From Octopus bimaculoides (taxonomy: Eukaryota), in assembly GCF_001194135.2 (NCBI RefSeq), contig NC_068989.1, positions 20,459,440 to 20,504,681 on the forward strand: a DNA stretch of 45,242 nt. The letters run 5' to 3'. The notes beneath the pieces are model-generated. The model was not told the origin of the DNA. It did no database searches and saw nothing but the letters and a program-made list of their open reading frames with translations. This document shows, piece by piece, positions 10,732 to 36,029 of the stretch (the first letter of the stretch is position 1; every line of letters starts with the position of its first letter). A program made the position numbers and the translations under genes.

Positions 10732-10782
<51 letters not shown>

Positions 10783-13999: not shown

Positions 14000-14855
14000 G
14001 AGAGTCAAAAAAAGTTTTGCTTCGGCAACAGGAGGAAAAATAAGACAAATTACGGCAGAAAAACGCAAACTGCTAAAATATAAAATATGTTGAAAAAAGA
14101 AGACACAAAAGTGGAAATAATTCCACCAAAAGAATTAATGGAAACTGAGAAGAGAAAAATAATTATTCCTGAAACTTTTAATGTTAAATCTAAGAAAATA
14201 GATCAAGTGAAGGAGGAAGCAGTAGAAAAATGTTTAAATAACATTTGGAAAGACATTGAATACGTCACAAGAGGAAGAAGGTTCGGCACAGTGGAGGTTC
14301 GAATGGTGAACGAGAAGAAAGCTCAAATTCGCTCAATAAAAACATTGAGAACGGACGAGGTAAATTCTCCTTCCAATGTATATTGGGAGGATAACCTCCA
14401 AAGTAAGAATAACTAGAATCCCACCGGAAATGGATGCAGCCTGGCTTGTGGCAGCTGTGACGATGGACTTGGAGGAAAAAATCACACTCCTCCAAGCCAC
14501 TGTCACGGAAAAACAAATTTGGCAAGACCAAACACTAAACATATTAATCCAGACGGAACCTCAGACGCTGGAAGAAATACCAGAGACCATTGAGATAGGG
14601 GAGGAGAGCCTGGTAGTGTTTGTAGAGGGCAGACAACGGCGTTGTTTTAATTGTGGAAAGCTGAACCACGTGCGGGCCGAATGTAGCCCTCCTCAGGAAG
14701 AAAATGAAGAAGAGGAAGAAGAGAAAGAAATAAAAGAAGCAGAAAGTGGAAGCAGCAACCAAGGGGAAAATATCGGGAAGAGAAATATTCACCCAGCCTC
14801 CCCAACAAAAGCATCGGAAATAAAACCAAAGAAGAAAGCGGTTGCAGAATGTTAA
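14000..14855 (+). pseudogene. Tx1 ORF1 (gag-like), frameshifted, with zinc knuckle
   Basis: ...RITRIPPEMDAAWLVAAV...VVFVEGRQRRCFNCGKLNHVRAEC (CX2CX4HX4C) followed by an acidic/lysine-rich tail. Frameshift near 14380. Confidence 0.85.
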
Positions 14856-15098
14856 GTCTGCCAAGCGTATATCCAATAAATATATCAATTAAGACATCTA
14901 TCAGATAGACGTAAAGAACTATTACATTTTATGGAATGATTTTAGAAAAGATGTAGGCCCTCTGCGAAAAGACTTTTCACAGATAATTTTTGAGGGCCCA
15001 CCTCCGCCAATCCCACGATTCCGAGAAAAAAAGAAGAGGTGGGGATTTCTTCACCTCCTTCTTCATCTTCTTCTACCGGATAAAAAGATAAGACGCTC

Positions 15099-18000
15099 AT
15101 GTCAATTCACGTTGGTTGTTTAAATGTGTGTGGCCTGACGTCGAATTGGAAGAAAGGGCGCTTCCTAAATGACATCAATTCACGCAATTTGGTTGTTATT
15201 GTAGCTGTAGCTACTGAAACCTGGTTAAAAGGGCCAAGAAATCTGCTCCCGTTGCTGGGCGGCTACGAGAAATTCATTTCTCTAGGTTGACCGGCGGGCG
15301 GGTCCTATTGAAAAGAAACCGGGTTTCAGAGAAAAGGTTAATTTTTTCCTATCCAGAAGGTAGGCTGGTCGTCATGGACCTGACATTCAGTTGTGGTAAG
15401 TGGATCAGTCTGGTTACGATTTATGCACCCAATTCCGGTCAAAGTGAGTATTTTAGTGACCTAGAGAAGTTTCTGGGTACGTCACATTCACTAGTTTTGT
15501 TAGGAGACTTTAACACAATCTGCGAAGCACGTGTAGATTTTTGGATCTCGAGAACAGATAGGAGAAGTAACATTGGATTCCGGGAACTGCTAAGTCGTTT
15601 TCAGCTAGCAGATCTATATAGGATGGGCACCCGAACACTTCATTGTGAACATGGTCAATTGGCGACGGGTCTTTAAGGTCTTACTTAGATTTAGATAACA
15701 TCTGAATTAGGAAAGCAGATAAGAACATAGCTAAGTGCCCACAATTTTATCCGGTCAGCTACAGTGATCATCAGTTGGTCACTTGTGAGATGAACCTAGA
15801 TAAAGTATATAGACAAGGATCTGGCTACTGGAAACTCAATACGTCCCTTTTGGCGATTGAGGAGTACGGAGAGCGGATTAAGTTGTTGATACAGAGGACT
15901 TTAACAAGAGCCATCATTAATAATAAATGATGGTATGCCCTCAAACGAACCATTAAATTCGAGTCTATTAGATATAGCATAGGTTTAGTGGCTAGTGAAC
16001 GTAGGCAGGAACGGGGTTTAGTTAGGGCTATAAAGGAAGCCATGAGGAGTTGCAGTGCAACCCAGTTGAAGGCGAAGAAACTGGAACTAAACCAGCATCT
16101 CAAAGCCAAGCACATGGGATTCATTGTCAGGGCTAGACTACGTGCAGTGGGTTGCGAGGGAATCAAGGGCACTGAACGGGCCCGAGTGGTGGAAGCCCAG
16201 CGTAGAAATGATTCCACAGTACGATCTTTGGTGAACCATCAAGGTGAGTTGATAAACGAATCCGAGGAGATGTGTGAGGCCTTTCAGGAGCACTTCTCCC
16301 AGCTTTTCAGGGGAAGCGATGGATCGGACAGTAGGAGGGACCTACCAGACTTCTTCACCGGTCTGCCGCGCCTCTCGGGGCGGAATGCGGAGTCTTGTGA
16401 AGGGCCGATCACACCTGAGGAAGTAATTGAGACTATAGCAGACTATGGCATAAGTCACCGGGACTGGATGGTCTACCCTACGAGGTGTATAGAAGTATGC
16501 CAGACTTCTTCGAGCATCTGCCAGTGTGTACACGAACTAACAACAGAATGGGTTTGTTCCCAGATCTGTGTGCCGGGGAGTGGTGACACTGATCGCAAAG
16601 GGCCCGGACAAGGGGGATTGTTTAGATAATTTCCGGCCGATCACTCTGCTTAACACAGAGTTTTTAACACAGAGATTTTAGCCAAGGTGCTAGCAAAAAG
16701 GTTGGTGCGTGTAGCGGATGGCCTGATCGGGGAGGCAGAAACTTATGGCATCCTCGGCAGAAGCATTCGGGACTATCTCCACCTTCTACGCTACACCTTA
16801 GAGGGGTTTCAGAGTTGTGGTAAGGGTGGGGAAGTGGTCCATTTAGACCATGCTAAGGCATTTGATAGGGTTGACCATCATTACCTGGTGTCTGTTCTTG
16901 CACAGTTCGGCCTGGGTCTTGGCTTCCTTAGGAGGATAATTCAATTGTATAACATCGACTAGATCGTTCGGGTGAACGGTTTTCTGTCCAAACCGTTCTG
17001 TATCAAATGCTCGGTTCGTCAAGGGTGTCAACTCTCAACGCTTTTGTACGTGATGGCTCTTGAGCGAAAGTTGAGTGACATCCTGAGAGCGCCAAGCAGT
17101 AGAGAGACGGTTTCAGCTTATGTGGATGACATCACCTTCATCGTGACCAAAATAGAACACCTACAGAAGGTATGCGAGGCCATTGAGGTCTACGAGACGG
17201 TGGCAGGAGCAAAGATTAATCGGGATAAGTCAGTCAGCATGCAACTCAGCACCTGGAGGGGAAGTCGACGCCTCCAGACAGCGTTGTGGGACGTTGGACG
17301 GAGGGACCGGTCAAGTCGCTAGGAGTCTGGTTTGGGCCACATCTCAAGGTAGAAAAGAACTGGGCTGAGGTTTCGAGCAGGGTGAACAACATAGTCATAA
17401 CCTGGTCCTGGCGATGGCTATCCCCGAAAGGGAGGGCGGAGGTGGCCAATGATTCGTGGTTGCCCAAATTGGAAAGACAGCTCTTTCGCTTTTCGTGGAA
17501 GAGCTCGAAACCACTTGTGAGACGTTCTATGTGCTGTCANNNNNNNNNNNNNNNNNNNNNNNNNNNNNNNNNNNNNNNNNNNNNNNNNNNNNNNNNNNNN
17601 NNNNNNNNNNNNNNNNNNNNNNNNNNNNNNNNNNNNNNNNNNNNNNNNNNNNNNNNNNNNNNNNNNNNNNNNNNNNNNNNNNNNNNNNNNNNNNNNNNNN
17701 NNNNNNNNNNNNNNNNNNNNNNNNNNNNNNNNNNNNNNNNNNNNNNNNNNNNNNNNNNNNNNNNNNNNNNNNNNNNNNNNNNNNNNNNNNNNNNNNNNNN
17801 NNNNNNNNNNNNNNNNNNNNNNNNNNNNNNNNNNNNNNNNNNNNNNNNTGTTAAATGTGACGATTCCTTGGGTGGGGTGGGGGGGTGACCCTAGGTATCG
17901 AGGATAATCAACTAGACAGTCTGATCGAACGTACATTCGGGCCGAAGACACTGGGTAATTTCCAAAAGTCTTTGACCTGGAAGTGTTACCGAGGAGCCTT

Positions 18001-18450
18001 GCCCATTCAAGATAAGCTCGCAAGACACGGTCAAAGCGACACACCGATCTGTCCAAGATGCAGGCAGGAATGGAAACCATCCTGCACGCTATTGTTCAGT
18101 GCCCAGGTGTGTCGGAGGTGTGGGCTTATGCGGAATATCTGTTGTCTGTTACAGTAAAAGTTCAGCTATCGTCTGAGTCAATTTTAAAAATTGACCCACC
18201 TGATTTTCTGACGAAAGAAGATAAGCATTGTTTTCCCATAGTAGTCGCAATCGCGAAAGAAGCGGTATGGAAGACAAGAATGAAAGGAGTAATGACAAAC
18301 AGCTTCATCTCTGGCCTCGATCTACAAGGATATTTCACTTATCATTTGAAAAGGAAAGTGAGGCTGGAGAGAAGATGCCTGTCAGAGAAAATGTTTAATG
18401 ATAGATGGAAGTATGTGGTACGAATGTTGTATATGAGTGTAACCACGTGA
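15099..18450 (+). pseudogene. Tx1 ORF2: APE endonuclease, reverse transcriptase and zinc finger (disrupted)
   Basis: APE motifs VGCLNV, TETW, TIYAPN, LLGDFN, YSDH. RT motifs FRPITLLNTE, AFDRVDH, VRQGCQLS, AYVDDITF. C-terminal CPRC..ETILHAIVQC. Multiple stops/frameshifts and an N gap at 17540-17848. Confidence 0.9.
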
Positions 18451-18678
18451 ACATGACAAAGGTCTACCATCGGTATCAGTGGTGGATTGGGGCTCATGGG
18501 GTCAAGAGCTTAACCATCACTCCATCTGTTTTGTTTTTTGTTGTGTTTATCATTCGTATTTATATTTTGTACTGAATTTTTAATATCACCTTATGTTATA
18601 CAATTTGTTTGTATCTGACCCCAAAATCAGATTGTGTCGTCCCCTCTATGTTGGCTCCTAGTGGGCAATAAAAAATCA

Positions 18679-18880
18679 AGAATCGTTAGTGCAACGGGCA
18701 AAATGCTTAGAGGCATTTAATCCGTCTTTACATTCCGAGTTCAAATTCCGCCGAGGTCGACTTTGCCTTTCATCTTTTCGGGGTCGATTAAATAAGTACC
18801 AATTTATCATTGGAGTCGATGTAACCGACTTACCCACTACCCCGAAATTGCTGGCTTTGTGCCAAAGTGTGAAACCAATA
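18679..18880 (+). mobile_element. SINE-A body lacking its first ~15 nt (target of Tx1 copy 1)
   Basis: Begins AGAATCGTTAGTGCAACGGGCAAAATGCTTAG directly after the LINE tail; the rest is standard SINE-A. Confidence 0.85.
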
Positions 18881-20125
18881 TTTGACTGGTACTTTATTTG
18901 ATCAACCACGGAGAGGTGAAAGGCAAAATTGTCCTCGGAGAGATAAAAGGCGGGATTTGAACTTAGAATGTATAGTGTTAGACTAAGTACCGGAATGCAG
19001 TTTGTTCGATACACTAACGATTCTGCAATTTCAACACAATGAGCTAATAAAAATAATGGTTTCTAATTTAGGCACCAAGCAAAATAAAAATGAAAAATTT
19101 AGAGGAAGGGCTTGACGGGTTCTAGCATGATTAAAAGCACGGTTGACTTCATTGGCATTTGAAATCAGAATGTGAAAAAGTAGAATAAATATAGCAAGGC
19201 ATTTTATTTGATGCTCTAACTATTCTGTCAATTTAACTCTCTGTGTTACTAACGATAATAACAGTCTTGTCCATCTATTGTAAATGGTATGGTTAATTTT
19301 GTATCGTTTTAAAACATTTTGAATTCAAACTAATTTGTACTCNNNNNNNNNNNNNNNNNNNNNNNNNNNNNNNNNNNNNNNNNNNNNNNNNNNNNNNNNN
19401 NNNNNNNNNNNNNNNNNNNNNNNNNNNNNNNNNNNNNNNNNNNNNNNNNNNNNNNNNNNNNNNNNNNNNNNNNNNNNNNNNNNNNNNNNNNNNNNNNNNN
19501 NNNNNNNNNNNNNNNNNNNNNNNNNNNNNNNNNNNNNNNNNNNNNNNNNNNNNNNNNNNNNNNNNNNNNNNNNNNNNNNNNNNNNNNNNNNNNNNNNNNN
19601 NNNNNNNNNNNNNNNNNNNNNNNNNNNNNNNNNNNNNNNNNNNNNNNNNNNNNNNNNNNNNNNNNNNNNNNNNNNNNNNNNNNNNNNNNNNNNNNNNNNN
19701 NNNNNNNNNNNNNNNNNNNNNNNNNNNNNNNNNNNNNNNNNNNNNNNNNNNNNNNNNNNNNNNNNNNNNNNNNNNNNNNNNNNNNNNNNNNNNNNNNNNN
19801 NNNNNNNNNNNNNNNNNNNNNNNNNNNNNNNNNNNNNNNNNNNNNNNNNNNNNNNNNNNNNNNNNNNNNNNNNNNNNNNNNNNNNNNNNNNNNNNNNNNN
19901 NNNNNNNNNNNNNNNNNNNNNNNNNNNNNNNNNNNNNNNNNNNNNNNNNNNNNNNNNNNNNNNNNNNNNNNNNNNNNNNNNNNNNNNNNNNNNNNNNNNN
20001 NNNNNNNNNNNNNNNNNNNNNNNNNNNNNNNNNNNNNNNNNNNNNNNNNNNNNNNNNNNNNNNNNNNNNNNNNNNNNNNNNNNNNNNNNNNNNNNNNNNN
20101 NNNNNNNNNNNNNNNNNNNGTTTTA

Positions 20126-20335
20126 AGGTGGCGAGCTGGCAGAAACGTTAGCACTCCAGGCGAAATGCTTAGCGGTATTTCGTCTGTCTTTATGTTCTGA
20201 GTTCAAATTCTACCGAGGTCGACATTGCGTTTCTTCTTTTCGGGTTCTATAAATTAAATACCAGTTGCGTACTGAGGGCGATCTAATCGACTGTCCCCCT
20301 TACCCAAAATTTCGGGCCTTGTGCCTAGAGTAGAA
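20126..20335 (+). mobile_element. SINE-A copy
   Basis: AAGGTGGCGAGCTGGCAGAAACGTTAGCAC head, box B, central domain and short-type tail. Confidence 0.85.
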
Positions 20336-20439
20336 AAGAATATAGCGCTGGGTTTTAGTGAATTAAATAAATCTGAGTAATTGTTACAAGAAATGTGAAA
20401 ATTACAATCGACACCAGCAAGATGTGCATTTTTGCAACC

Positions 20440-20815
20440 TTAGAGCTTCAGGTTTATTCCCAGTACGCGACACTTTGGGCAAATGACTTCTACTATAGCC
20501 ATGGAATGACTAATGATGGGTGAATTTGGTAGACGGAAACTATGTGTAGAAACTTGTCGTTTATAGATGCATAGATGTGTGTATGTGTGTGTGTGTGTAT
20601 CGTTATGTCTGTTTTTTCCTACCATCGCTTGATAACTGGTGTGGGCTTGTTTACGTCCATGTAATTAGCGGTTCGCTAATAGGAACCGATAGGATAAGTA
20701 CAAGACTTCCAGAAAAATGAAAAAAGTATTGGTGTCGATTTGTTCGACGAAAAACCCTTCCGAGCGGTTCTCCAGCCTGGCCGCAGTCCAGTGACTTAAA
20801 CAAGTAAAAGAAAGA
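20440..20815 (+). mobile_element. SINE-B copy (internal (TG)n, central domain, AAAAG tail)
   Basis: CACTTTGGGCAAATGACTTCTACTATAGCC...GGTAGACGGAAAC...(TG)n...CCGATAGGATAAGTAC...TGGCCGCAGTCCAGTGACTTAAACAAGTAAAAG. Confidence 0.8.
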
Positions 20816-20959
20816 GAAATATATTTTGACCAGTATTAACTTTTTATACTTGTTAACACACTGTGTTGGTAAATATAAATCCAACGATGGGATCTTTATA
20901 CGCGTTTTTGGTTTTTAATTTTGTTTTTCACTCGTGAGGCGTCAGTTGGCGAACTGGAC

Positions 20960-21021
20960 GCCACGTCAGGCTATGAGAAGCGACGCCAGGATATGAGAAG
21001 CTACGTCAAGCTATGAGAAAC
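20960..21021. repeat. ~20-bp minisatellite x3 (ACGTCAGGCTATGAGAAGCG-like)
   Basis: Three imperfect tandem units visible directly. Confidence 0.8.
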
Positions 21022-21074
21022 AAATCTTTGAACATTCACCAATCCTATAGACATTCTTGCGTCCATAGTTTCTT

Positions 21075-21299
21075 ATTTCTTTATTGCCCACAAGAGGCAT
21101 AGAGGGGACAAACAAAGACAGACAAAGAGATTAAGTCGATTACATCGACCCCAGTGCGTAACTGGAACTTAATTTATCGACCCCGAAAGGATGAAAGGGA
21201 AAGTCGACATCGACGGAATTTGAACTCAGAACGTAACGGCAGACGAAATACCGCTAAGCATTTCGCCCGGCGTGCTAACGTTTCTGCCAGCTCGCAGCA
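21075..21299 (-). mobile_element. SINE-A, well-preserved copy with long tail and 18-bp TSD
   Basis: TSD TTGCGTCCATAGTTTCTT at 21057-21074 and 21300-21317. Tail (SINE orientation) ...GTCCCCTCTATGCCTCTTGTGGGCAATAAAGAAAT. Confidence 0.92.
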
Positions 21300-21519
21300 T
21301 TGCGTCCATAGTTTCTTCATTCTTCCTTTGTAGAATGCACAATTTTATTACTTTTCTGTAATAGTAATTCAGCTGGAAGCTAAATATATCGAAACATCTG
21401 CCTGCTCAACTTCAGTATCAATCCATAATCATTTTCTTTGACTTTTGTGAATATCACCCGAGGTAACACCTAAACGAATGGTATAATTTGTAATGAGATC
21501 AGNNNNNNNNNNACTGGTT

Positions 21520-23470
21520 TCAGCCAGAGTCTGGGGCCACACTGGAGCACTGCCTTTCAGTGTTTTGGGGTCTCCTTTCGGTACTGTTTTTGGTGAAGAA
21601 GCGAATTGGACGAAGCTGCTCTTCTTTCTGCTTCCTGCCGCAATGTGAACTCATCTGGATTTCATATAGAAATTTGTCCAGGTGCTTCTTGAAGGTTTCC
21701 ACATCTACACCTTGCATATCCCTTAGCTTCCTTGGTAGGAAGTTAAACAGTTGCGGTTCCCTGAAACTCAAGCCGTTACAATACAGGGTCCTTATCTGAG
21801 ATGAAGAAGACAGTATTTTTGGTATTATGTAGTGCCATCCAAAGTTGGGAGCTACACCTTCCAGGATCTTCCATATGTATATCACTGCATACCTTTCTCG
21901 CCTTCTCTCCAATGAGTAGAGCTTCAGTTCTTATAGGCTCTCCCAGTAGCTCATCTGTTTCACCGAGTCAATCTTCTTTGTGTAGTGGCGCTGCATCGCC
22001 TCGAGTTCAGCCAGCAATATGACGCTCTGCGGCGACCGCAGTTGGGAGCAGTAATCCAGACGATTGAGGACAAATGTTCTCCATAGGAGTATCAGGGTAT
22101 CCTTATTTCTAGTTCTGAATGATATAAGGATCCATCCAACTACTCTTCTGCACAGTGTTACCATCCTGACAATACTCACGTGGACTATTGCATCACTACT
22201 CATGTGAATTCCCATTTCATGTACCAATTCTAACTCTCGGATTGCAATACCTCCTGTTCCTATGTATTCCGATTGTAGTCTGTGGTCCGAAAGCGGAGTG
22301 CTTGAAACTTATCAGCATTGAACTGCATGCTATTTTCATCAGCTCATTTATTTATTGCATGCAGGTCATTTTGCAGCTTTACTACGTCATCAGGTCTCTT
22401 GACCGCCTGTGACACGTTTGTATTAGCAGCGTAGCTGGTGAGAGTGGCTGACCGTACGACTGACGGCATGTTAGAGAGAACCACAAACAGAAGTGGTTCC
22501 AGTATAGTTCCCTGACGAACTTTACTGCGGATTGATGTCTCCCCAGAGAGAGCATCATTGGCTGCAACTGCCTCCTTCTGTCCTGTGAAAAGTCGTGCAC
22601 CCACTCTCCCAGTTTTCCAGTGATACCAAGGTCGCGTAGTTTGTACATATCATCTCATGATCAACTTTATCAAAAGCTTTGGCAAAGTCGAAATATATTA
22701 CATCCACATCTGAGTGGTTGAGCTGTTATTTCAGTATCCAATCATAATGTTGTAGCAGCTGTGTGAGACTGCTCTTCCCAAGGCGGAAACCATGTTGTGC
22801 GTTTGTGAGCAAACTATTCTCTTCCAGAAACGTGATCATTCTCCTTCCGACAATGCGTTCCATGATCTTGCTACCATGTGAAATTAGAGAGACAGGCCTG
22901 TAATTTTTAACATCTGCTCTGCTTCCTTCTTCGTGGACAGGGCATATGATACTCTTTTAACAGTTTGGGAAGTTCTCCACATGCGAGGGCACTCTGAAAA
23001 AGTATCTGCAGAGGTTTTGCGAGAGCTTTCTTGCATGGTTTTAGGAGAACAACCGGAAATCTATCCGGATCCGTTGCTGAGTTTGAGCTCGTCTCATCAA
23101 TGGCTGATATTACATCTTCCTCTTTTATGTCGGTGTAATCGATGGTTGCCCTTTTCCCATGTAGGTCTTCAGTGTTGAAGAACTCTTTAGGCTCGCCCAC
23201 TTGCCAGTTTCCCAGTGGAGAGGTGAAGACATTCTGAAATTGCTTATTTAGTACTTCACCTATCTTGTATTGCACTGAGGCAAACTCTTTCGCCTTGGCT
23301 TCTCTTTCTATCCTCTCCTATTCATGAAGTAGTCTCAGTTTATTTCCGATCTCTAAAAGTTTCTTTTCTAGGAGGGATTTCTCGCTGTCAATAACTTGTT
23401 TATTTAAGCGATTAGAGATCTTTATTCTCTGCCTCATAAGGACTCTTCAGTTTCTTTTACAAAGAGTAGG
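21520..23470 (-). mobile_element. CR1-group LINE relic B
   Basis: Minus-strand motifs VDVIYFDFAKAFDKVDHE, VRQGTILEPLLF, SYAANTNV, RLDYCSQL and ERRRERYAVIYIWKILEGVAPN. Disrupted. Confidence 0.88.
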
Positions 23471-23514
23471 GTTTATGTTTATGAATATTGGGTAATGACT
23501 GTAAAAGTATGATT

Positions 23515-23880: not shown

Positions 23881-23989
23881 GTGGATTTTATACGTACATA
23901 TGATCATCTTGATATTTGGATCATCAATTTTGGAGTATGTACTGGAGTACTGGTATACGTGAGGATATCTTCAAGAAAATATTTCATAG

Positions 23990-24215: not shown

Positions 24216-25476
24216 TTCGACATAATAAGTTTCAAGTAAAAGAAACGATAAGTAACTTTTCAAGCGATTCGGTCTTTTCTCGGGCAACCGAATACTCTAA
24301 TATCCTCATCAATGATTTTGTTTTTCTTGAGTTGTGTATTGTTGTAGAGAATATTTATTGCTTTGGTTTGTTTCATGCCGTTATTAGTTTTCCTTACTGG
24401 GTATTGTCTTTCAAGTAATATTCAACGTTTATCTCTCGTTTTAAAATTTGATACAAGTTTGCAGGTTCTTCTTACCAGATGAACAAGAATCAATCAAGTA
24501 AAAAAAAATCAACTTCCTTGTACTGTTAACTCCTGAAATACGAAAAATAGAAGAGAAAATTGTGTGAGTAAAAGTGTATTGAAATTATATATTCTTATTA
24601 CACGTCAATGCTATAGCCATTAGACACGACATCACTAAGTGAAATGTACGAGTAATGGACAAAATAAAGTATAGAAGTGAGAAAAAAAAAACACCTCAAA
24701 AAACAAACACCATAGCGAACATACGGAAATACATAATAAAAAAATTGTAAAAGAATAAGTTGTACGAAAATGAACACTGAAGATAAAACAAAGCATCTAA
24801 CTATATTTAAACTACAAACCGACGTGGTTATAACACAAATCAAGGTTTAAACTACAAATCAATGTAGTTATAACACAAATCAATGAAAATATGCTACCAC
24901 GGAATGCAGTACAAACAAAATATATGACTCGGCCAAAGAAAGAAAACGATATTAGAGAAAGGACCTCACATACGGTAAATAATCTCTCGAGCAAAGAAAA
25001 TGCCACTGAACCCACTACAAACGAAACATAGGGACATTACAGCAAAACAAAGACTAACTATAGAGGGGAAAAGAAGTAAAATCTAAATGTTGATAAAGAT
25101 GAAAGTAGTCCTCATAGACGTATTCAACAAAATATATAGCCACCACACATAGTATACCCTCGACAAAACACAGAATATAACCATGCGTCACAACAGAACA
25201 TCCAGATTTATTGTATGGTACTTGTGATCCTTTCTATATATTCTATGATCAACGAATGAGAAACCAATTCTTTTATGTCACTGAAAGAATTGTAAACCAT
25301 TTTCTTCATTCTTAAAGTATAGTTGACATTGTAGTCTGCTGTAGCAAGCAAGCATGACTTGGCTACACGTTTTAGATGCTTATATAGGCGTGAAATTAGA
25401 CATCCTCTCTATCCGTTCATCCTTCATCAAGGGGCACATCTAGGGTCTGACAGTGGGAGGGTAAGAGTGGGCTGTA

Positions 25477-25706
25477 AGGCGGCGAGCTGGCAGAAACGTT
25501 AGCACGCTGGGCGAAATGCTTAGCAGTATTTCGTCTGTCTTTACGTTCTGAGTTCAAATTCCGCCGAGGTCGACTTTGCCTTTCATCCTTTCATGGTCGA
25601 TAAATTAAGTACCAGTTACGCACTGGGGTCGATGTAATCGACTTAATCCCTTTGTCTGTCCTTGTTTGACCCTCTATCTTTAGCCCCTTGTGGGCAATAA
25701 AGAAAC
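25477..25706 (+). mobile_element. SINE-A, well-preserved full-length copy with long tail and 14-bp TSD
   Basis: Perfect TSD AAGAGTGGGCTGTA at 25463-25476 and 25707-25720. Box-A-like GAGCTGGCAGAAACG and box-B-like GAGTTCAAATTCC. Tail ...TAGCCCCTTGTGGGCAATAAAGAAAC. Confidence 0.95.
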
Positions 25707-27549
25707 AAGAGTGGGCTGTACCAGTACACAAATGAATTCACTTACAACTGAATTGACTGGAGTGACGCGAAATGAAAGACCTTATTCACGGATATAAGGC
25801 ACTACCCATGACTTTATGATCGTGAAGTGTATAACCATGAAGTATAAATTAATCGATTAGTAATTGTCCTTTAGTCACCTCTGCACTTTCTGGATGTATT
25901 TATTCTCTGAAGATACATCTAGATATCTATAGATATGGTTTGTGAATAACTACATCAAGAAAACTTTGGCCTAAAATCTTCTTTGGGACCTAATAAAGTT
26001 GTCTTCTGTGTCCCTAGATTATAAAGTTGGTTCTCTACTACAATCATTAAGTGGTCTTGCTTTTGGGAAAGTTTCAGTTATTAAAGAAATATCTTTGTAG
26101 GATATCAAAAGGGGCTTTATAATTTTGATGTTCACTACCGAAATTTCTATCATCACAATATGTTTGACTTTTGTTCCCACGTTTGTATTATACTGAGGTT
26201 CTGCAACATTTCGGCACTTTTATTATGCCCCCTTGGCTCCAATGAAACTTATTTTTGCTGTTTTTTTCCTTCATAGTTCATATTTTTAGCAATTTTCTCC
26301 TCCATGAAATTGTCAGTAAAATACGAAAACTTCTAATGTGAGGCAATTTTAGTTTTAATTTCATTAATTAGGAGTTTTAGTCTTAATTTCATTAATTAAA
26401 GGATTGCATGCTTGATCGTATTCTTGATCTAGCTTCTCTTACCACAAATATATTATTTATTTTGGTTTATACTTTTGCTTTCAAAGGAAATGTCAGGTCA
26501 AAAATCACATCGAATACTTTGGGATATTTCGCTATTAATTTACATGCAGAATTTAAAACTTAAGGAAAAATTTTCTTTTTCTTTTCATCTTTGCAGTCTA
26601 TAAAATAAGTCTCATCCTGACTGTTTCGGCCAAGTGCTTATTTTATATGTAATACATTTTAGTCCACAGAAATAGGAGATAAAGCCCTCAGAGCAATTTG
26701 ATAAAGAGATATTGTGATGAAAAAACCAAGCACTGGAGGTTGGGAAATTTAAAATACTTCTGCGACACCCGTAAAAATATGTTAACGATAACAATAGCGA
26801 TGGCCTAAGATGCTAAAGTGCTTCCCTTTCAAGTATTTTCTGACGCAACAGTACAAATATAGTTGAAGGTCTGAGATTGTCAACACAAGATCGCAACTGA
26901 AGTACCAAATTCAACGTTAATTTTATGCTAATTTACAGTAAAACTATGATGAATGTTGAGTACGAAGAAAATACCGAAATTCACTTCAAACAAAATAATT
27001 GAATTTGATAGAAGGAAGAATTTATGATGAAGCTAAGGCAATTCAAAAATATTGATAAGCAGTAGATATTGCAATTGATATAATGAAGAAAATATCAATG
27101 CGTAAGTAAAACGAATTTTAATGATTACGTGACATTCTAAACATTATGAGGAAACAAAAGGAACAAAAAGCTCAACCACCACTACCACTACCAGCACAAC
27201 AATGCAATAATGAAATATGATTAACTTTCAATTAAGAAAGAAATAAAGACAATATTCCGAAAGACCCAACTAAAAGGGTAAGTGGCAAGGGTTAGGATAA
27301 AGGAGAAATAAAAGTATTAACAAATTGACGCAATGTGAGAAATTTATTTAAATATTGAAATATGGAGACACGATTATTTAAATTAACCTCAGTACATGGT
27401 TGGTATCTATTTTATCGACGCAGGAAAGATAACTGGTTCAGTCACCTCGGTGAGGTGTGAGTTTAGAATGTACGTTATTAAATATCAATAAACGTTAATT
27501 ATATCTGGAAATCTAGCAATCTTGTTGCCTATCCTGACAATAATGGTAT

Positions 27550-27860: not shown

Positions 27861-28518
27861 CCTTCCACCACAACACTAATAATAAGTATTTCTAATGTAG
27901 ACACAAGGTCAAACTTTTGTGGGAAGAGATGTGGCACTTAATCTCCTCCATTACATGACTACTATATATCTTGTACACTCCTACAAGTATAAGAGTCAAA
28001 GTCGAATATATAAAAATACCCTGACGAAATACTGCAGGGAATTTTGTCGGATTCTGCCTTCCATTGATTTAGCCAATAATAGAATTGATATTCAACATAT
28101 GAATGAAGCCACAAATTTTATAAAAGATCAAGTCGAATAAATTTATTCTAATCTTTAATCAGGACTTTGGATCTTACTTTATTGACGCCAGAAGAATGAA
28201 TAACAAAGTAAACCTTGGAGAAATTTGAAATCAAAACACCAACAGATTTAATCGGAAGATATTTTGTCTTTTAGTTTATTGAACTCAGTCTTAAGTAATA
28301 ATCAAGCAGCATAGGGCAAACAGTTATTATCATTGCTATAAGTATGCTGGAATGGGAAGAATTGTTAGAACGTAGGACAAAATGTCTTGCAGTTACGGCC
28401 CTTTACATTGGGAGTACAAATCCCGAGTACAAACATGTGTTTCATTCTTCAATATAATCAAATTTCCCTTCCCTATAAATTCCTGACCTTCTGTCTATAT
28501 TACAAATCAATATTATTA

Positions 28519-28735
28519 TAAGGTGGGCGAGCTGGCAGTCTCGCATGCCAGACAAAAATGCTCAGCGGCATTTCGTCCCTTTTTACGTTCTGAGTTCAAA
28601 TTCTGCCGTGGTTGACTTTGCCTTTCATCATTTTGGTGTAAATAAGATAAATATCAGTTGAGCACTGAGATCGGTGCAATGGATTTATCTCCTTCCCCAA
28701 AGTTGCTGACCTTGTGCCAGATTGTGAAACCAATA
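28519..28735 (+). mobile_element. SINE-A copy
   Basis: AAGGTGGGCGAGCTGGCAG head, GTTCTGAGTTCAAATTC, central domain and short-type tail. Confidence 0.85.
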
Positions 28736-29049
28736 CTATCATAAGGTCAGTAGGTAGACTTGAATGATGGAAGCGTCAGCCAAGATCCAGGCCTTTGTGT
28801 TCAAATCGAACCGAGGTCAGTTTTAACTTTCATCATACCAGAGTCGATATATCTGTTCAAGCAATTCCCTCTTTTACAATTTGCAGTTTTGTCCTTGTCA
28901 AGGTTTTGGAATGGCAAATCAGCGATTCAAATGGATTATCGTCCAATTTCCTCTTACATTCAGCTTGTGGTCGATAAATTAAACACCAGACTGTAATAAA
29001 TACAATTTCATATATTGTTTCTCTATAAACATAGTAAATAAATATATGC

Positions 29050-29298
29050 GTGACAGATTGGGCAAGTGACTTCTACTACAGTGAATTGAATTTGGTTGAT
29101 GGAAACTCCACAGGAGCCCACTGCACCTTCACACACTCCCACACATCCATAGAAGTTCTTTATACTTGTTTCGGTCATTGATTTGCAGCCATGGTTGGGG
29201 TATCGCCTTTGAAGGCTTTAATTGAACAAATCAACTTCAGTACTTCAAGTCTGGCACTTATTACAACGGTCTCTTTTGCGTAATCACTTAATTACAGT

Positions 29299-29340
<42 letters not shown>

Positions 29341-29476
29341 GAACACAAATTTACATACAAGGAGGGATCAATTTCGCTCCCACTTACCAAATTCCCATAT
29401 ACGCTCACAAGACATTAGTTAGTCTGGAGCTAGAGTTAAAGATTTGTCCGAGGTGCCGTACAGTGGGACTGAACTC

Positions 29477-29480
<4 letters not shown>
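29050..29480. mobile_element. Fragmented SINE-B pieces around (CA)n
   Basis: GGGCAAGTGACTTCTACTA (+) at ~29060; TACTTGTTTCGGTCATT tail complement at ~29163; head complement CCGAGGTGCCGTACAGTGGGACTGAAC at ~29450. Confidence 0.55.
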
Positions 29481-29530
<50 letters not shown>

Positions 29531-29531
<1 letters not shown>

Positions 29532-29900
29532 GTGGGGGTACCTAAATGAAACCGGAATTTTGCAATATTATCTTAGTTTTACATGTTTACACTTATATCG
29601 CCTTCAAAGTATTCTCCATTTGAAGCAATGCATCGGTCCATACGATTTTTCTACTGTTCGAAGCGGTGCTGGAACTCTTGCGAAGTGATCTCTTTTAACG
29701 TCTCCGTTATTCTTTCCTTCATCTCTTCTACATCTGCAAATTCCGTAGCACCAGCTTTCGTAACCAGTAATGACCTTCGAAAAAAGGTCCGGATCAACTT
29801 CCAGCTGTTCCTTCAGTTCAGGACATGCATTTCGTCGTGACTGCTTTTGATCGTCCGTGAGCAAGCGAGGCACAAATTTTGTTGCAACTCTTTTCATTCT
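29531..29900 (-). mobile_element. Internally deleted mariner relic inserted in (TA)n
   Basis: MKRVATKFVPRLLTDDQKQSRRNAC...KVITGYESWCYG (first catalytic D motif, mutated) joined directly to C-terminal EEMKERITETLKEITSQEFQHRFEQ..MDRCIASNGEYFEGD. Terminus next to the TA run. Confidence 0.8.
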
Positions 29901-30169
29901 CTGTAGGTACTCTTCATTCTAGTTTTTCTTCGAACTAAATCGTTATGAATAATTCCGTTGGAACAACGTATTATCCACGTAACTTACTTTTTCCCATAGA
30001 ATATCTTGCCTTCAACGATAATAATTAAAACGTTAATATTTGAATGTTTATTTTAAATCCCTTACTAGAAATTAGACTTAACTTTCAGTTGATTGTAATA
30101 GATTTTTGTACATTCTATTTGCTGAGAACAATGTAATTTACTTGTTTTCATTGTCTATGCACAGTTTTA

Positions 30170-30385
30170 GGGTATCGAGCTGGAAGTAATTAGACCTTCG
30201 GAAAAAATGCTTTGCTGTATCTCTTCTGGCTCATCACATTTTTAGTTCAAAACCCACCGACACCAACTTTGTTTTTAATCCCTTCGTGGTCGACAAAATA
30301 AACTACCAACCAATACTGGGGTCGATAGTCTCTATTAACCTCCTCCCCCCCCACATTGCTGGTCTTGTGCCCAACTCAAAAACCG
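30170..30385 (+). mobile_element. Degenerate SINE-A copy
   Basis: CGAGCTGGAAG head, TTTTAGTTCAAAACCC, GGTCGACAAAATAAACTACC, TGCTGGTCTTGTGCC tail. Confidence 0.7.
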
Positions 30386-30597
30386 TTATTTATGCATAAC
30401 ATAAGATGGCGGAGTGGAAATATTGGTACAGTGTTAGACTATTTAGTCATGATTTTGTACGTTCCGAGTTCAAATCCCATTACAAGTATCTTTGTTTTTA
30501 TTCCATTCCACCGCTAAAATAAGTAAAATATTGCTATTAGATCGAAATCTCAACGTAGTTGGCTCCTGCACTTACTAGTGTAATATTGCTAATGAAG

Positions 30598-30628
30598 AAG
30601 GGACGAGCTGGCAGAATCGGTAGCACGC
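30598..30628 (+). mobile_element. SINE-A head (5' half of a SINE split by Tx1 copy 2)
   Basis: AAGGGACGAGCTGGCAGAATCGGTAGCACGC, then an abrupt switch to LINE 5' UTR. Confidence 0.85.
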
Positions 30629-30844
30629 TGCGGTTGTCTTTGCGAGAACTTGGTTAGTAATTGTTTGTTATTATTACTTATTGTTATTGCTGCCAATTAT
30701 TGTTAAATTTTGAACTTTTCCTATTGTTCTATGTTCTGTTTTAACAGACGTAGTGGACTGTTGCTTCCCTTCGTAAGAAGGGGAAAATAATTTTTGAAAT
30801 AATTTTTGGAAAAAATATTTTGGAAAATATTCATCTTTGTGAAA

Positions 30845-32410
30845 ATGAATTCGGAGGACAAGTCTTCTAACCCTGACGAAGCTAACCAAAGAGCAACTGT
30901 AAAACAAGACAAAATGAGCGAAATTGTGAACGAAAGCCACACAAATGCAGGAAACGGAAAAAGGAGCCAAGAAGGAAAACTGAATGCTGAAAACGATAAA
31001 ATGAATAACGGAAAAGTAAACCCAACAGAAGACAACCAAAAGAAGATTAATTTTGCCACCGCAGCCGGTGTGAGAAAAGATGAATTGAACATAGAGCTAG
31101 ATTCACTGCAGCAACACAGAGGTATGTTCGAAAGGGAAAGTTTTGATGTTAAAGCCACCCTCCCTAATAAACTCACCGAAGCAACAAAGAGGAAAGTAAT
31201 AACATATAAGACAATGATAATAAAAGACAAGAAAATAGACAGGGCATCCAAAGAACAAATCGAGAAGTGTCGACAACTCATCTGGTAAGACATCGAGTTC
31301 TTGAGTAGAGAGAGAAGATAAACCACAGTAATGGTGTACTTCAAAAATGAGGAAAAGGCTATAAAGCAATCGCTCCTACCGATAAAAACTAATGAAATCA
31401 TTTTATTACCAACTTATATGGGTAAGGGAACATCCAAGAGGAAATCCCACCAGAAATAAATGTCACCTGGATTATCTCAGCCCTTCTAATGAGGGTTGAA
31501 GATAAAATCAAGATGATTGAAGCTTCCAGAATACAACAACAGAACTGGCGGGGCCAAAGGGGCTTGAGATCATAATCCAAGCAGCACCCCAGACGTTAGA
31601 AGAAATTGCTGAGAACATCCACATCGGAGAAGAAACCATCTTACGGGTAATGGTGGAGGGAAGGAAACCCAGATGCTACGAATGTGGCGAAAAAGGCCAC
31701 AATCGGGTAAACTGCCCCACCTGCAAGGAGAAAGAACAAGAGGGAAAAAAGAACAAAATGAAAAGACCGACCAGTAGAACCTCGGCACTGATGGTGTTCA
31801 ACAAGCCGGGGAAAAACGGTTGGTCGGTAGTAAGACCCCCAAAAAAGGAAAAAAATAATAACAACCAGCCCAACCCTACAACAACCAAAAAAAAAACTCA
31901 GGATACTGAAAGAAAAATTACCCCTCCCCCCACTATTCCCCCAAAAGTCAACAATATCAGATTCCTCCCCATTCTATTCCTCCTTCGGCGATGAATCCCC
32001 CCTTGCCCCTCTAGCTCGGATTTCCCCCTCTCCCAGACACCACCCCTTACCCACCAAGCCCAGGCATTCTGTCCCCGATATCAAGNNNNNNNNNNNNNNN
32101 NNNNNNNNNNNNNNNNNNNAAGTCCAACAAAATCTAACGAATATAAAGAAAACCTGACTGCAATAAACAATGATAACGAACAATTAAAAAAAAGGTTAAA
32201 GCAAATACCAACGGCGTCAATTTACAAACATCACCCTAAGACTCCAGTAAATATTCCCATTTATTAAATAGATAAAATGAACTATAACATCTTTAAAAAC
32301 TACCACCCAACTGACATGGGTCCTCCAAGACTTGATTTTAACAAGTCGATGTACGAGGACCTATGTCAGAATATCACCCCACTAACCAGTGAAAAAGAGA
32401 GTACCACTGA
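30845..32410 (+). pseudogene. Tx1 copy 2 ORF1 (disrupted) with zinc knuckle
   Basis: MNSEDKSSNP...KKINFATAAG...; MVEGRKPRCYECGEKGHNRVNC (CX2CX4HX4C); Pro-rich tail. Collinear with copy 1 ORF1. The 3' limit is approximate. Confidence 0.8.
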
Positions 32411-32423
32411 CTAAGGTAAGTCC

Positions 32424-35400
32424 ATGTCAAGCATTCACTTTGGATATATAAATGTGCGTAGCCTGACGTCTAGTTGGAAGTAAGGACGCCTCCTAAATGA
32501 CGTCAGGTCACGGAATTTAGATGTTGTTGTTGCTACAGAAACCCGATTGAAGGGGCCAAGAGATCTGCTCCAGCTCTTTTACGGTTACGAGAGTTTCATG
32601 TCTCCATGCTGTCCTCATAGGGGGAGCGGGGTGTTGGTCCTATTAAAAAGAAACGAGTTTTCTGAGAAAAAGTTGATTTTTGCACATCTAGAAGGTAGGC
32701 TGGTCGTCATTGACTTGACGGTCGGCCGTTGTAAGACTATCAGACTGGTTGCATTTTATGCACCTCAAGATACGGGTCAAACTAAGTATTATCAGAACCT
32801 AGAGAAGTTTCTTGGTACATCATATCCCTTAGTTGTGCTAGGAGACTATAACACAATCAGCGATGCACGTGTAGATTATGTTGGCTCGTGTGTTAATAGA
32901 AGTAATGCTTGCTTCCAGGATCTACTAAGACGTTTTGAGCTGGTAGATCCATACAGACTGGAATTTCCGAATGATCCATTGTGGACATGGGCAAATAGCG
33001 ACGGATCTTCCAGGTCTTATCTAGATAGAGTATTAATTAGAAAAGTAGATAAGAAGATAGCTGGGTGTCCACAGTTTCACATGGTCAGCTACCGTGATCA
33101 CAAGATGGTCACCTGTAAGCTCGACATAGATAAGTTATATAGAGGTCCCGGCTACTGGAAACTTAATACGTCCCTTTTGGCGATTACAGAGTACAGAGAC
33201 CAGATTAAGATGTTAATTCAGGGGTCATTAACCGGATCCATTATTAACAACAAATGGTGGTATGCCCTCAAGCGAGCCATTAAACATGAGTCTATTAGAT
33301 GTAGCATAGGTTTAGTGGTTAGAGAGGCTAGAAAGGAATCAGCTCTAGTTAAGGACGTAGAGGAAGCAATGCGAACTGGCTCTGCGGCTCAGGTGAAGGC
33401 CTAGAGACTGGTGTTAAATCAGCACCTCGAAACCAAACACATGGGTTGCATGGTCAGGGCTAGACAACGTGCAGTGGGTTGCGAAGGAATCAATGCTGTG
33501 GGGTGGGCCCGAGTGGGAGAAGCCCAACGCTGCAATGATGTCACAATTCGATCTTTGACGAACCAGCAGGTTAAGTTGACAGACGAACCCGAGGAGATGT
33601 GTAAGGTCTTTAAGGACCACTTCGCCCAGCTCGGGACAGGATGCGAGCTGTATAAGAATATGCCGGACTTGTTCGGACACCTATAGCTGAGTGTCAACGC
33701 GAACTGGCAACAGAATGGGCTCATCCCCAGATCAGTACGCTGGGGAGTGGTGACGCTCGTCAGAAAGGACCCGAACAAGGAGAATGTCATTGATAATTTT
33801 AGGCCTATCACTCTGCTCAACCAAAGTGTTATCGAAAAGATTGGCGCGTGTCGCGGATGGGTTGATCGGGGGAGCACAGGCATGTGCCATCCCCGGCAAA
33901 TCCATTCAGAATAATTTCCATCTTATACGATACACTATACAGGGAATTAATAACGATTCCGGCAAGGGAGTGGCAGTGGTCCATTTAGATAAGTCAAAAG
34001 CTATTGATAGGGTCGACCATCACTACCTGGTGTCCCTTCTGGCACAGTTCGGTCTGGGTCTTGGCTTCCTCAGGTGGATCATTCAAATGTATGACAACAT
34101 TGACTCGGTAGTTCGGGTGAACGGCTTTCTTTCTAAGCCGTTCCACGAAAACGCTCGGTTCGTCAAGGATGTCTGCTCTCCCGCTTTTGAATGTCATAGC
34201 TCTTGAGCCATTGCTTCGAAAGCTGAGCGGTATTTCGAGACAGCCAGGTTGTGAGGTATCGGTTTCAGCCTACGCGGATAACATCACCATTATCGTGACC
34301 AAAATGACTCACCTACAGAGGGTAGGCAAAGCCATTGAGAAATACGAGACGGTGGCAGGAGCACCTGGAGACGCTAGCTGATACCTCCTGAAGGCGTCGT
34401 GGGATGCTGGACGTAAGGTTCGAATAAATTGCTAGGAGTTTGGTTGGGACCAAACCTCCAAATATAGAAGAATTGGGCCAAGGTATCGAGCAGGGTGACT
34501 CACATTGCCAAGATCTGGTCTTGGTGGTGGCTATCCCTCAAAGGGAGGGTGAAGGTGGCCAATGTGTTTATCGCATCGGTCATCACATACCGCCTAACCG
34601 TCGTGCCTTGTCCTGGTTCGTGGTTGATCAAGCTGGAAAGACAGCTCTTCCACTTCTTGTGGCAGGGCTCGAAACAGCTTGTGAGACGCTCTATCTGCTA
34701 TCAACAACCATTAAAGGGTAGGCTAGGGATGCCTTGGCTATTGATGCGCAGACATGCGCTGAGGCTGAGGCACCTGTGGCTCTACCTGGATGGTGAACGG
34801 GTGTGGTCTTCGCTGACGAAACAGATGTTTGCCAAGTTCACTGGTTTCGGTGGACGGGAAACCTGGTTTAATCGTAGATCGAAGTTGGGTACATGGTATA
34901 CGGAGTGTCGCAAGGCACTCCTGCTTTTCCGTCGCTCGGGCAATGCCTGTGGTAGTGGTTCCACCGCTGTCTTTTCTAGAGGGTTTGTAGAGGCGGAATG
35001 CGATGATACATTGGAGGAGACCCTAGGTTTTGACGATAATCAGCTGACCAGTCTGTTCCAACGTACATTCGGGCCGAAGACCCCGGATAATTTTCAGAAG
35101 TCTTTGGCATGGCAGTGTTACCGCGGAGCCTTACCTGTCCGGGATAAACTCTCAAGGCACGGTAGCCGAGACACTTCAATCTGTTCAAGATGTGGGCGGG
35201 ACAAGGAAACCGTCCCACACACTATNNNNNNNNNNNNNNNNNNNNNNNNNNNNNNNNNNNNNNNNNNNNNNNNNNNNNNNNNNNNNNNNNNNNNNNNNNN
35301 NNNNNNTGTCGACTGAATCTATAGTGAAAATTACCCACCGGATTTCTTAACGAAAGAAGGTAGGAATTGTTTTCTCTCTGTAGTAGCAACTGCGAGAGGG

Positions 35401-35568
35401 ATTATAATGAGGAAAAGAATGAAAGGAATAAGCCCTAATCTGGTGAATTATTTCATCTTCCACCTAAAAAGGCAAATAGGGCTGGAGAGGAGATGTTTGA
35501 CTGAAGATATGTTTGGAAAAAGATGGAATAATGTTGCACGAATGTTGGGCATGAAAGCCTCCGCGTGA
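32424..35568 (+). pseudogene. Tx1 copy 2 ORF2 (APE, RT, zinc finger), disrupted
   Basis: YINVRSL, AFYAPQ, LGDYN, SYLDRVL, YRDH, GPGYWKLNTSLL, FRPITLLN, DRVDHH, SAYADNITI, CSRC. Has an internal deletion relative to copy 1 near 33630. Confidence 0.9.
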
Positions 35569-35791
35569 ATGCGATATGGTTTAAAAACCCAAGTCTATGG
35601 CAAGGTGGGGGTCATGGGGTCCGTTATAATCCCGCCTCTACTCCATCTGTTATGCCACATTGTGTCCTATCATTATCCGTATTATATGTTTTTAGAATTT
35701 TTAAAAGGACCCCAACCGCATTTCTTGTAAAATCATTCGATTTCGTTGTGTTGTCCCTTTTATGTATGTCCATATGGATAATAAAAAATTA

Positions 35792-35995
35792 AGAATCGTT
35801 AGCACGCCGGGCCATATTCTTAGTGACGTTTCATCCATCTTTACGTTCTGAGTTCAAATTCCGCCGAGGTCGATTTTACCTTTCGACCTCTCGGAGTTGA
35901 TAAAATAAGTATCAGCTGATCACTGGGAGTCGATGCAATCAACTTACCCTCTCCCCACAAACTTTCAGTCTTATGCCAAAATTTGAAACCAATAT
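35792..35995 (+). mobile_element. SINE-A body (3' half of the SINE split by Tx1 copy 2)
   Basis: Resumes AGAATCGTTAGCACGCCGGG...GTTCTGAGTTCAAATTCCGCCGAGGTCG...TGCCAAAATTTGAAACC. Confidence 0.9.
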
Positions 35996-36029
35996 TACTA
36001 ATAAATGGAAAAATCGTTAGCAAAAAACA

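Follow-up and report, generated by a model that had tools for sequence, protein, structure and literature searches.

Many families of the Tx1 clade of long interspersed nuclear elements (LINEs) insert into specific sites of other transposons, among them Xenopus Tx1L in the piggyBac-type Tx1D, crocodilian Tx1-Mar in Mariner-N4_AMi, Tx1-9_AMi in Harbinger, and Tx1-8_Crp and Tx1-4_AMi in long terminal repeat (LTR) elements, and a short interspersed nuclear element (SINE), SINEU, shares the target of Tx1-Mar (PMC4494074). Keno is listed for U2, Dewa for tRNA arrays, Mutsu for 5S, and Kibi and Koshi for microsatellites (Kojima and Fujiwara 2004, as cited in PMC4494074). LINEs and SINEs can also be linked through their 3' ends, as in the eel pair UnaL2/UnaSINE1 with its shared 3' tail stem-loop (Ohshima/Okada model; Kajikawa and Okada 2002, as cited in PMC4494074). 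In octopus genomes SINEs and LINEs are reported as the largest repeat classes, and L1-Tx1 is an annotated LINE class (PMC8967140, PMC13282606). Here we describe a 45,242-nt stretch of the Octopus bimaculoides genome (NCBI RefSeq assembly GCF_001194135.2, contig NC_068989.1, positions 20,459,440 to 20,504,681 of the forward strand; the window in what follows), in which two copies of a LINE assigned to the L1/Tx1 group are joined by their 3' ends to the same nucleotide of a SINE family, SINE-A.

The locus resembles the transposon-targeting Tx1 LINEs in several respects: an APE-type LINE of the L1/Tx1 group uses a repeated mobile element as landing site, at a fixed position and orientation, divergent members share one target, and an associated SINE exists. 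It differs from them in that the target would be a SINE, a class absent from the targets in the literature examined, in that two copies are at hand against the tens to hundreds published and, with regard to SINEU and Tx1-Mar, in that the copies of the octopus partner SINE, a subfamily termed SINE-A2 (n = 2), do not lie at the target of the LINE. As with Keno, Dewa, Mutsu, Kibi and Koshi, the target is short, multicopy and of RNA polymerase III (Pol III) type or simple sequence, but unlike the targets of Keno, Dewa and Mutsu, SINE-A is a dispersed retroposon and not a functional gene array, and tRNA models miss its head. No description of a LINE targeting a SINE, or of Tx1 targeting in cephalopods, was found in the literature searched, and searching it with SINE sequence strings gave nothing relevant; the O. 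vulgaris repeat paper comes without a consensus library.

The two LINE copies and their junctions with SINE-A

The features at the two insertions are the following (a slash marks a junction throughout).

13830-13995, minus strand: SINE-B, a 5'-truncated antisense copy adjoining the 5' end of LINE copy 1 (sequence reading)
About 13996-18678, plus strand: LINE copy 1, of a different subfamily from copy 2 (direct reading, comparison with copy 2)
18679-18882, plus strand: SINE-A body, nucleotide 14 to tail, directly 3' of copy 1; 88.9% identical to the consensus
30582-30596, plus strand: upstream copy, AATATTGCTAATGAA, of the split SINE-A's own target-site duplication; its partner AATATTACTAATAAA lies at 35991-36005
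30597-30628, plus strand: 5' half of the SINE-A split by LINE copy 2, matching the SINE-A head (about the first 29 nt of SINE-A)
30629-35791, plus strand: LINE copy 2, apparently full length (direct reading, open reading frame (ORF) and domain analysis)
35792-35996, plus strand: 3' part of the split SINE-A, nucleotide 14 to the tail ...GAAACCAATAT; 86.9% identical to the SINE-A consensus

Copy 2 comprises a 5' untranslated region (UTR) of about 213 nt, an ORF1 with a CCHC knuckle, an ORF2 with APE, reverse transcriptase (RT) and zf-RVT domains, and a 3' UTR ending ...TCCATATGGATAATAAAAAATTA. At least six frameshifts or stops mark the copy as a pseudogene. Read directly, its 5' junction (30600-30629) is ...GGGACGAGCTGGC[AGAATCGGTAGCACGC]/TGCGGTTG..., which in a wider reading of the upstream side becomes ...GAAGAAGGGACGAGCTGGC AGAATCGGTAGCACGC / TGCGGTTG..., with the LINE running from 30629. 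The 3' junction (35780-35811) reads ...AATAAAAAATTA/[AGAATCGTTAGCACGC]CGGG, the LINE ending at 35791/35792 (...CCATATGGATAATAAAAAATTA / AGAATCGTTAGCACGC CGGGCC...). The 16-mers AGAATCGGTAGCACGC at 30613-30628 and AGAATCGTTAGCACGC at 35792-35807 form a target-site duplication with 15/16 identity (P of at least 15/16 in a fixed register, 2e-8). Both SINE halves were assigned by aligning them to eight further SINE-A copies from the window. As the SINE carries its own duplication, a 13/15 match (P 1.6e-6), external to both halves, they are parts of one SINE, and copy 2 entered a SINE-A that was already in place. Thus, the pre-insertion site of copy 2 can be reconstructed together with its duplication, and a SINE-A split by a LINE with a 16-bp duplication, as the original prediction had it, is borne out. 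Two further SINE-A relatives stand close by. A diverged SINE-A-like copy occupies 30165-30391 (plus strand; nhmmer E 7.5e-26), just 5' of the split SINE. An older SINE-A with an internal deletion (36008-36206) has at its head a 16-nt near-duplicate (36005-36050; TGGAAAAATCGTTAGC ... TGGCAAAATCGTTAGC, spacer AAAAAACA), which could stem from replication slippage or mark an insertion, extremely truncated, at nearly the same position of the head.

Copy 1 is likewise a pseudogene, with at least eight frameshifts or stops and the end ...CTCCTAGTGGGCAATAAAAAATCA; where it begins is uncertain, a 5' truncation in or ahead of ORF1 being probable. The 3' junction, read directly over 18662-18699, is ...GGGCAATAAAAAATCA/AGAATCGTTAGTGCAACGGGC, with the boundary at 18678/18679. 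Alignment to the eight other SINE-A copies places this joint at A/AGAATCGTTAG, which is the same nucleotide as in copy 2 and bears out the junction originally proposed. On its other side copy 1 abuts SINE-B, which is probably a separate abundant octopus SINE. Because of this neighbour the pre-insertion site of copy 1, and with it an empty target with duplication, is not reconstructable; the sequence at 13702-13829 shows no homology to the 5' UTR of copy 2 (score 33 versus a null of 29.7 +/- 4.9), and for copy 1 the 3' junction alone is informative. SINE-B itself shares a central block (GTCGA..ATCGACCCCAG...GTACTTATT.TATCG) with SINE-A and otherwise looks unrelated, a hint that octopus SINE families may have a core domain in common. 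Three bp past the tail of the SINE-A flanking copy 1 stands an inverted, 3'-truncated SINE-A (18886-19033, minus strand), so that this region has been struck by SINEs repeatedly.

No assembly gap touches any junction. In copy 1, collinearity with copy 2 is kept over the gap at 17540-17848: alignments stop at 17539/34703 and resume at 17881/35013, with 309 N plus 32 nt facing 309 nt of copy 2. The reading frame changes there, but since the number of N is estimated this carries no information. Copy 2 in turn stays collinear with copy 1, and in frame, over its gap at 35226-35306 (84 versus 77 nt); the gap at 32086-32119 lies between ORF1 and ORF2 of copy 2, and those at 19343-20119 and 21503-21512 lie between the two LINEs.

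The two insertions are independent: they come from two subfamilies that diverged while active and lie in separate SINE-A copies. Over 790 aligned codons of ORF2, copies 1 and 2 differ at a synonymous proportion (pS) of 0.41 and a nonsynonymous proportion (pN) of 0.19, with dN/dS = 0.37 and differences per codon position of.244/.163/.314, against dN/dS of 0.65-0.99 and flat codon positions in neutral simulations run through the same pipeline (n = 12). Much of the divergence therefore accrued under protein selection, in active lineages and not in dead duplicates. A single ancient insertion copied by segmental duplication, with the two loci then decaying apart, would agree with the spacing of 17 kb, the shared orientation and the similar overall identity (about 70-80%). 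It is at odds with the selection pattern just given, with a synonymous divergence (0.41) twice that of the SINE flanks (0.20; p 6e-8), and with the star-like relationship of those flanks, which are 79.1% identical to each other versus 88.9% and 86.9% to the consensus and no closer as a pair than either is to unrelated SINE-A copies (0.73-0.82). Moreover, similarity between the loci stops exactly at the 3' ends of the SINEs, and the 5' flanks differ. Substitution identity does not discriminate (80% for the 3' UTR, 80% for the SINE flank), whereas synonymous divergence and the indel load do, with 63 gap columns in the 3' UTR alignment versus four in that of the SINE flank. We consider such a duplication very improbable, and the original description of the copies as divergent subfamilies, and not duplicates of one insertion, stands. 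A reversed order of events, in which 5'-truncated SINE-A copies inserted at the A-rich tails of resident LINEs, draws on that A-richness and on SINE-A being probably moved by the same machinery. Upstream of copy 2, however, stands a SINE head that overlaps the body by 16 bp, with the SINE's own duplication enclosing both halves, and it would have to be explained why two truncations fell on one nucleotide, which leaves this order next to no probability; taken jointly, duplication and reversed order carry very little weight.

The LINE, SINE-A and their common 3' end

Assignment of the element to the L1/Tx1 group of non-LTR retrotransposons is sound by its protein features. Pfam finds in its ORF2 Exo_endo_phos (E 3.5e-9), RVT_1 (5.5e-13) and zf-RVT (5.7e-5, below the Pfam gathering score), and intact relatives have all three ORF2 domains (APE, RT, zinc motif). 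A profile built from the two stitched window ORF2s and two relatives matches the human LINE-1 ORF2 protein (ORF2p; PDB 8uw3, 8sxt, 9hdo) end to end, over positions 8-844 of 994 (E 8e-61), with the same domain order of endonuclease, linker, RT and C-terminal domain, whereas R2 proteins match that profile over the RT only. The octopus LINE differs from human LINE-1 in having a CCHC-knuckle ORF1 instead of Transposase_22, in a 3' hairpin without poly(A) tail, and in a use of sites that appears more selective than the TTTT/AA of L1. By Pfam, a zf-CCHC knuckle without Transposase_22 is found in the ORF1 of the window LINE and in the intact Argonauta and cuttlefish-like ORF1s introduced below, and no RRM was detected. 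An ORF1 of CCHC type in animals has been called 'consistent with the Tx1 clade' (PMC5203782), so the ORF1 type is consistent with Tx1 proper. Two cluster look-ups for a clade name among database neighbours returned 'hypothetical' or unnamed proteins only. Thus, of the original assignment to the Tx1 clade the L1/Tx1 group holds, with the narrower clade as a candidate rank.

SINE-A is abundant: about 28 related segments make up around a tenth of the length of the window. Its head had been described as tRNA-like, which the tRNA models leave unsupported: Rfam gives no match (E <= 1 over the whole window, E <= 10 over 141 nt), ARAGORN at default settings none, and at a relaxed threshold ARAGORN returns a weak cloverleaf at consensus positions 13-92. 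SINE-A does carry a box-B-like GAGTTCAAATTCC and two box-A candidates, TGGCAGAATCG and TAGCACGCCGG, on which the originally proposed separation of the Pol III boxes depends. If TGGCAGAATCG is box A, the insertion site falls inside it and the LINE separates box A from box B; if TAGCACGCCGG is, the site lies 5' of both boxes, and the promoter is left intact in the SINE downstream. Sub-threshold Rfam 'microRNA' matches in the window (mir-297, mir-466, mir-3149 and others, at 335-500, 2253-2322, 4500-5680, 29469-29547, 41368-41455 and 45128-45194) are simple-sequence artefacts, all on (TG/TA)n-type microsatellites.

LINE and SINE-A are further connected by their 3' ends, for which these features are needed.

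18648-18678, plus strand: 3'-terminal motif of LINE copy 1, hairpin GCTC[CTAGT]GGGC followed by AATAAAAAATCA; the copy 2 equivalent is at 35765-35791
21075-21299, minus strand: SINE-A2 copy with LINE-type tail ...CCTCTTGTGGGCAATAAAGAAAT (tail homology); its 18-bp duplication AAGAAACTATGGACGCAA, which starts AAGAA, is at 21300-21317 and 21057-21074
25477-25706, plus strand: SINE-A2 copy (a SINE-A subfamily) with tail ...GCCCCTTGTGGGCAATAAAGAAAC, its terminal stretch of about 45 nt being homologous to the LINE 3' end; its 14-bp duplication AAGAGTGGGCTGTA, which starts AAGAG, is at 25463-25476 and 25707-25720
Other hairpin sites: SINE-A tails, e.g. 10525-10543 and 37912-37930; the Argonauta locus (L001), 12760-12790 and 18826-18856; the cuttlefish-like loci L013, 7135-7176, and L015, 8149-8190

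The two SINE-A2 copies are the youngest SINE-A in the window (91-93% identical to the consensus). In place of the usual SINE-A tail they end ...GTCCCCTCTATG..CCTCTTGTGGGCAATAAAGAAA[C/T], to be compared with GTCGTCCCCTCTATGTTGGCTCCTAGTGGGCAATAAAAAATCA at the end of LINE copy 1, and their tails align with the LINE 3' ends over the last 45 nt or so. The 19-mer CTTGTGGGCAATAAAGAAA is exact in both SINE-A2 tails and recurs with three mismatches at the end of copy 1, and these three places are its only hits (chance expectation, 0.01); further tail-like matches at 8522 and 23853 are due to chance, as are all ten matches of the SINE-A2 tail 19-mer among JGI metagenome contigs, which lie on microbial contigs without a SINE upstream. 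The commoner tail (...GGCCTTGTGCCAAAATTTGAAACCAATAT; SINE-A1) shares GGCCTYGTGCCAAAWTT with the 3' end of the cuttlefish-like LINE; across the 15 loci compared, this string is confined to that position and found once per element.

All these ends carry a 3-4-bp hairpin with a YTWGT loop directly before an A-rich terminus: octopod and cuttlefish-like LINEs as well as both types of SINE-A tail. The hairpin reads GCCC[CTTGT]GGGC in SINE-A2, GTCC[ATAT]GGAT in LINE copy 2, GCC[CWTGT]GGC in the Argonauta LINE, and (T)GGC[CTTGT]GCC(A) in SINE-A1 and the cuttlefish-like LINE. With the stem scored as 4 bp on 17 sequences, 86.8% of cells pair versus 58.8 +/- 4.3 after shuffling (0/500 shuffles reach the observed value), slid controls giving 18-53%, and in three of the four pairs both sides have changed; these figures concern a short stem in related sequences, with the structure read from the same sequences and copy 2 shifted by one loop nt. 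From this homology we conclude that the SINE-A tails derive from the 3' end of the LINE group. The hairpin is probably the element recognised by the reverse transcriptase, and the LINE family probably mobilises SINE-A as well. The arrangement is like that of stringent pairs such as UnaL2/UnaSINE1, in which, as here with SINE-A2, SINE tail and LINE 3' end correspond, a short hairpin with covariation precedes an A-rich end and duplication lengths are similar. Stringent pairs mostly involve the L2, CR1 and RTE clades, whereas the octopus partner is an L1/Tx1-group LINE, the pairing being known here from sequence.

Relatives in Argonauta and in cuttlefish-like contigs

In the protein libraries the nearest relatives are from Argonauta hians (P0002), from a JGI fragment (P0001) and from cuttlefish-like ENA contigs, Argonauta being the sole close one. 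The Argonauta hians locus, which is the only related octopod locus compared, holds two elements.

BAAFZT010000021.1 (locus L001), 9647-12965 and 13400-19074: two LINE relatives in tandem (ORF2 comparison)

Their ORF2s are 67-70% identical and their last 59 nt 86%; copy A is without about 120 C-terminal codons. Each LINE is followed by (TCTA)n and then by a 179-bp flank that is 98.9% identical between the copies, an identity for which gene conversion of nearby flanks may be an alternative source. These two are the only (TCTA)n runs of at least four units in 21.5 kb, and a search of the locus for SINE-A found none. The position directly before (TCTA)n recalls Kibi and Koshi. Two divergent relatives beside one target parallel the octopus case with a different target, as expected of a target-switching, site-specific lineage.

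The cuttlefish-like relatives come from ENA assembly ERZ21867824 and are 80-83% identical to proteins of Acanthosepion pharaonis. Contig ctg122906l (L013/L014) bears an intact LINE family with an ORF2 of 1153 aa, probably from a cuttlefish relative, which is arrayed head to tail in tandem units of 6594 bp that are 97.7% identical to each other, with a third, partial unit. The copy on ctg62082l (L015) adjoins a satellite of about 150 bp. With 385 member sequences in a single 90%-identity cluster, the family may be recently active.

Choice of target and consequences

Both independent LINE copies of the window (2/2) join SINE-A nucleotide 14 at their 3' junction; Kojima's working criterion counts a family as target-specific when the same kind of sequence is found in >20% of flanks. 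The window offers about 14 SINE-A head sites among 84,598 site-strands, giving P ~1.7e-4 per hit for random insertion. All four junctions (two LINE, two SINE-A2) read tail/(A)AGAR, with duplications of 16 bp for LINE copy 2 and 14 and 18 bp for SINE-A2. It is possible that the endonuclease merely prefers such a short motif (AAGAR or AGAAT) and that SINE-A, which carries it and fills about 10% of the region, was hit twice as a hot spot. That all four datable insertions begin with (A)AGAR, two of them not in SINE-A, agrees with such a coincidence, as does the selection of the window after the fact. SINE-A heads, however, hold seven of the 139 AGAAT sites and about ten of the 636 AGAA sites of the window, so that two hits under motif-only choice have P ~2.5e-3 to 2.5e-4. 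The exact consensus 11-mer AGAATCGTTAG is present in both LINE-bearing SINEs and kept by none of the eight uninterrupted copies, and Argonauta offers an independent parallel. A short nick-site preference alone is thus insufficient, something more being needed for two LINE hits at one SINE nucleotide, and we regard pure coincidence as quite unlikely. A second possibility is an inherited, RNA-guided junction: an ancestral master element would have resided in a SINE-A, and its read-through transcripts would consist of LINE plus SINE-A from nucleotide 14 onward. The SINE portion of such a transcript could pair with a nicked genomic SINE-A, giving the arrangement of copy 2, or reverse transcription could start from the hairpin of the SINE-A tail, LINE and SINE body then moving as a unit and giving the headless copy 1. 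The fixed nucleotide would in that event reflect descent and homology, not a reading of the site by the endonuclease. Several observations sit well with it: the SINE-A tail bears the hairpin and tail motif of the LINE group and so a possible entry site for reverse transcriptase, copy 1 lacks a SINE head, the SINE-A2 insertions lie outside SINE-A as expected of a weakly specific endonuclease, and the single mismatch in the 16-bp duplication could be the original difference between RNA-derived and target-derived sequence. Co-transcribed target sequence has been reported to sharpen R1/R2 targeting (as discussed in PMC4494074), and use of this kind could give an invariant junction without a strictly specific nick. 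R2, unlike the octopus LINE with its APE, has a restriction-like endonuclease, and read-through transcripts in octopus are hypothetical. No duplication surrounds the unit of copy 1 and SINE body, and past the first 11 nt the LINE-adjoining SINE segments share no derived changes and look ordinary (87-89% identical to the consensus); an RNA-borne SINE segment, if there is one, would therefore have to be very short or constantly replaced. Both variants together strike us as unlikely, though to be reckoned with.

For site-preferential integration at the level of the endonuclease as the cause of the shared junction we see about an even chance, and site-preferential insertion is likely once RNA-guided targeting is included in it. 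Several points weigh against such a preference. The sample is two insertions, and neither two word-indexed protein searches nor an exhaustive HMMER search of 1.84 billion representatives gave further octopus members of the family. No SINE-A head was found in a search 5' of copy 1 and no duplicate of its downstream flank in a search across the window, so that only one complete target site is documented. Both SINE-A2 copies (n = 2) inserted outside SINE-A heads; the endonuclease is therefore not obligatorily SINE-specific, and the LINE machinery can use other sites, although the SINE-A2 copies may be moved by a different LINE subfamily. Among the cuttlefish-like relatives the 3' flanks, when compared, differ and are not shared. 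Occupation of two of about 14 SINE-A heads in 45 kb is far above any possible genome-wide rate, which makes the locus atypical, and the window was flagged because of the coincidence, so that the number of windows read tempers the P values given for hits on SINE-A heads. Of the original proposal that the LINE targets SINE-A, then, the shared junction nucleotide and the independence of the events hold, while the small sample, the headless copy 1 and the placement of SINE-A2 count against its generality.

On the anatomy, independence, tail homology and hairpin covariation described above, a preference of the endonuclease can be worked out as follows, where we infer the nick positions, the reading of the site by the endonuclease and a genome-wide preference. 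Each LINE would have integrated by target-primed reverse transcription into a separate SINE-A, its 3' end joining nucleotide 14. The APE endonuclease would nick the bottom strand at 5'-...CGATTCT^GCCAGC-3' (top strand GGC/AGAATCG), the 3' end of the LINE RNA, a hairpin followed by AAUAAAAAAUYA, would be reverse-transcribed from that nick, and a cut of the top strand 16 bp downstream would yield the 16-bp duplication. Part of the preference would lie in the short nick-site motif (A)AGAR and the remainder in further recognition of the SINE-A head by ORF2p. SINE-A would be a hitch-hiker of the LINE group, and the LINE would land in the repeat it helps spread. Taken as a whole, the view that an octopod L1/Tx1-type LINE homes to a fixed nucleotide in the head of a SINE family that borrows its 3' hairpin tail, and that its relatives have switched target, is put forward tentatively, as a possibility that we rate somewhat below even.

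Target-specific LINEs model how APE endonucleases acquire sequence specificity, and they also attract interest as tools for site-directed insertion. To the targets known for Tx1-type elements, namely small-RNA genes, microsatellites, DNA transposons and LTR elements, a SINE would add a new 'safe harbour' class, and a partner SINE as target would, if true, link mobilisation and targeting in one pair. The tail homology and the conserved hairpin stand whatever the outcome on targeting, and they name a candidate driver of SINE expansion in octopus. Nested insertion of LINEs in SINEs would affect repeat annotation, age estimates and SINE transcription in octopus. If the preference is real, the SINE would be both parasite and landing pad of the LINE, offering it an almost unlimited, harmless target, and, depending on which motif is box A, the LINE would inactivate copies of its own hitch-hiker.

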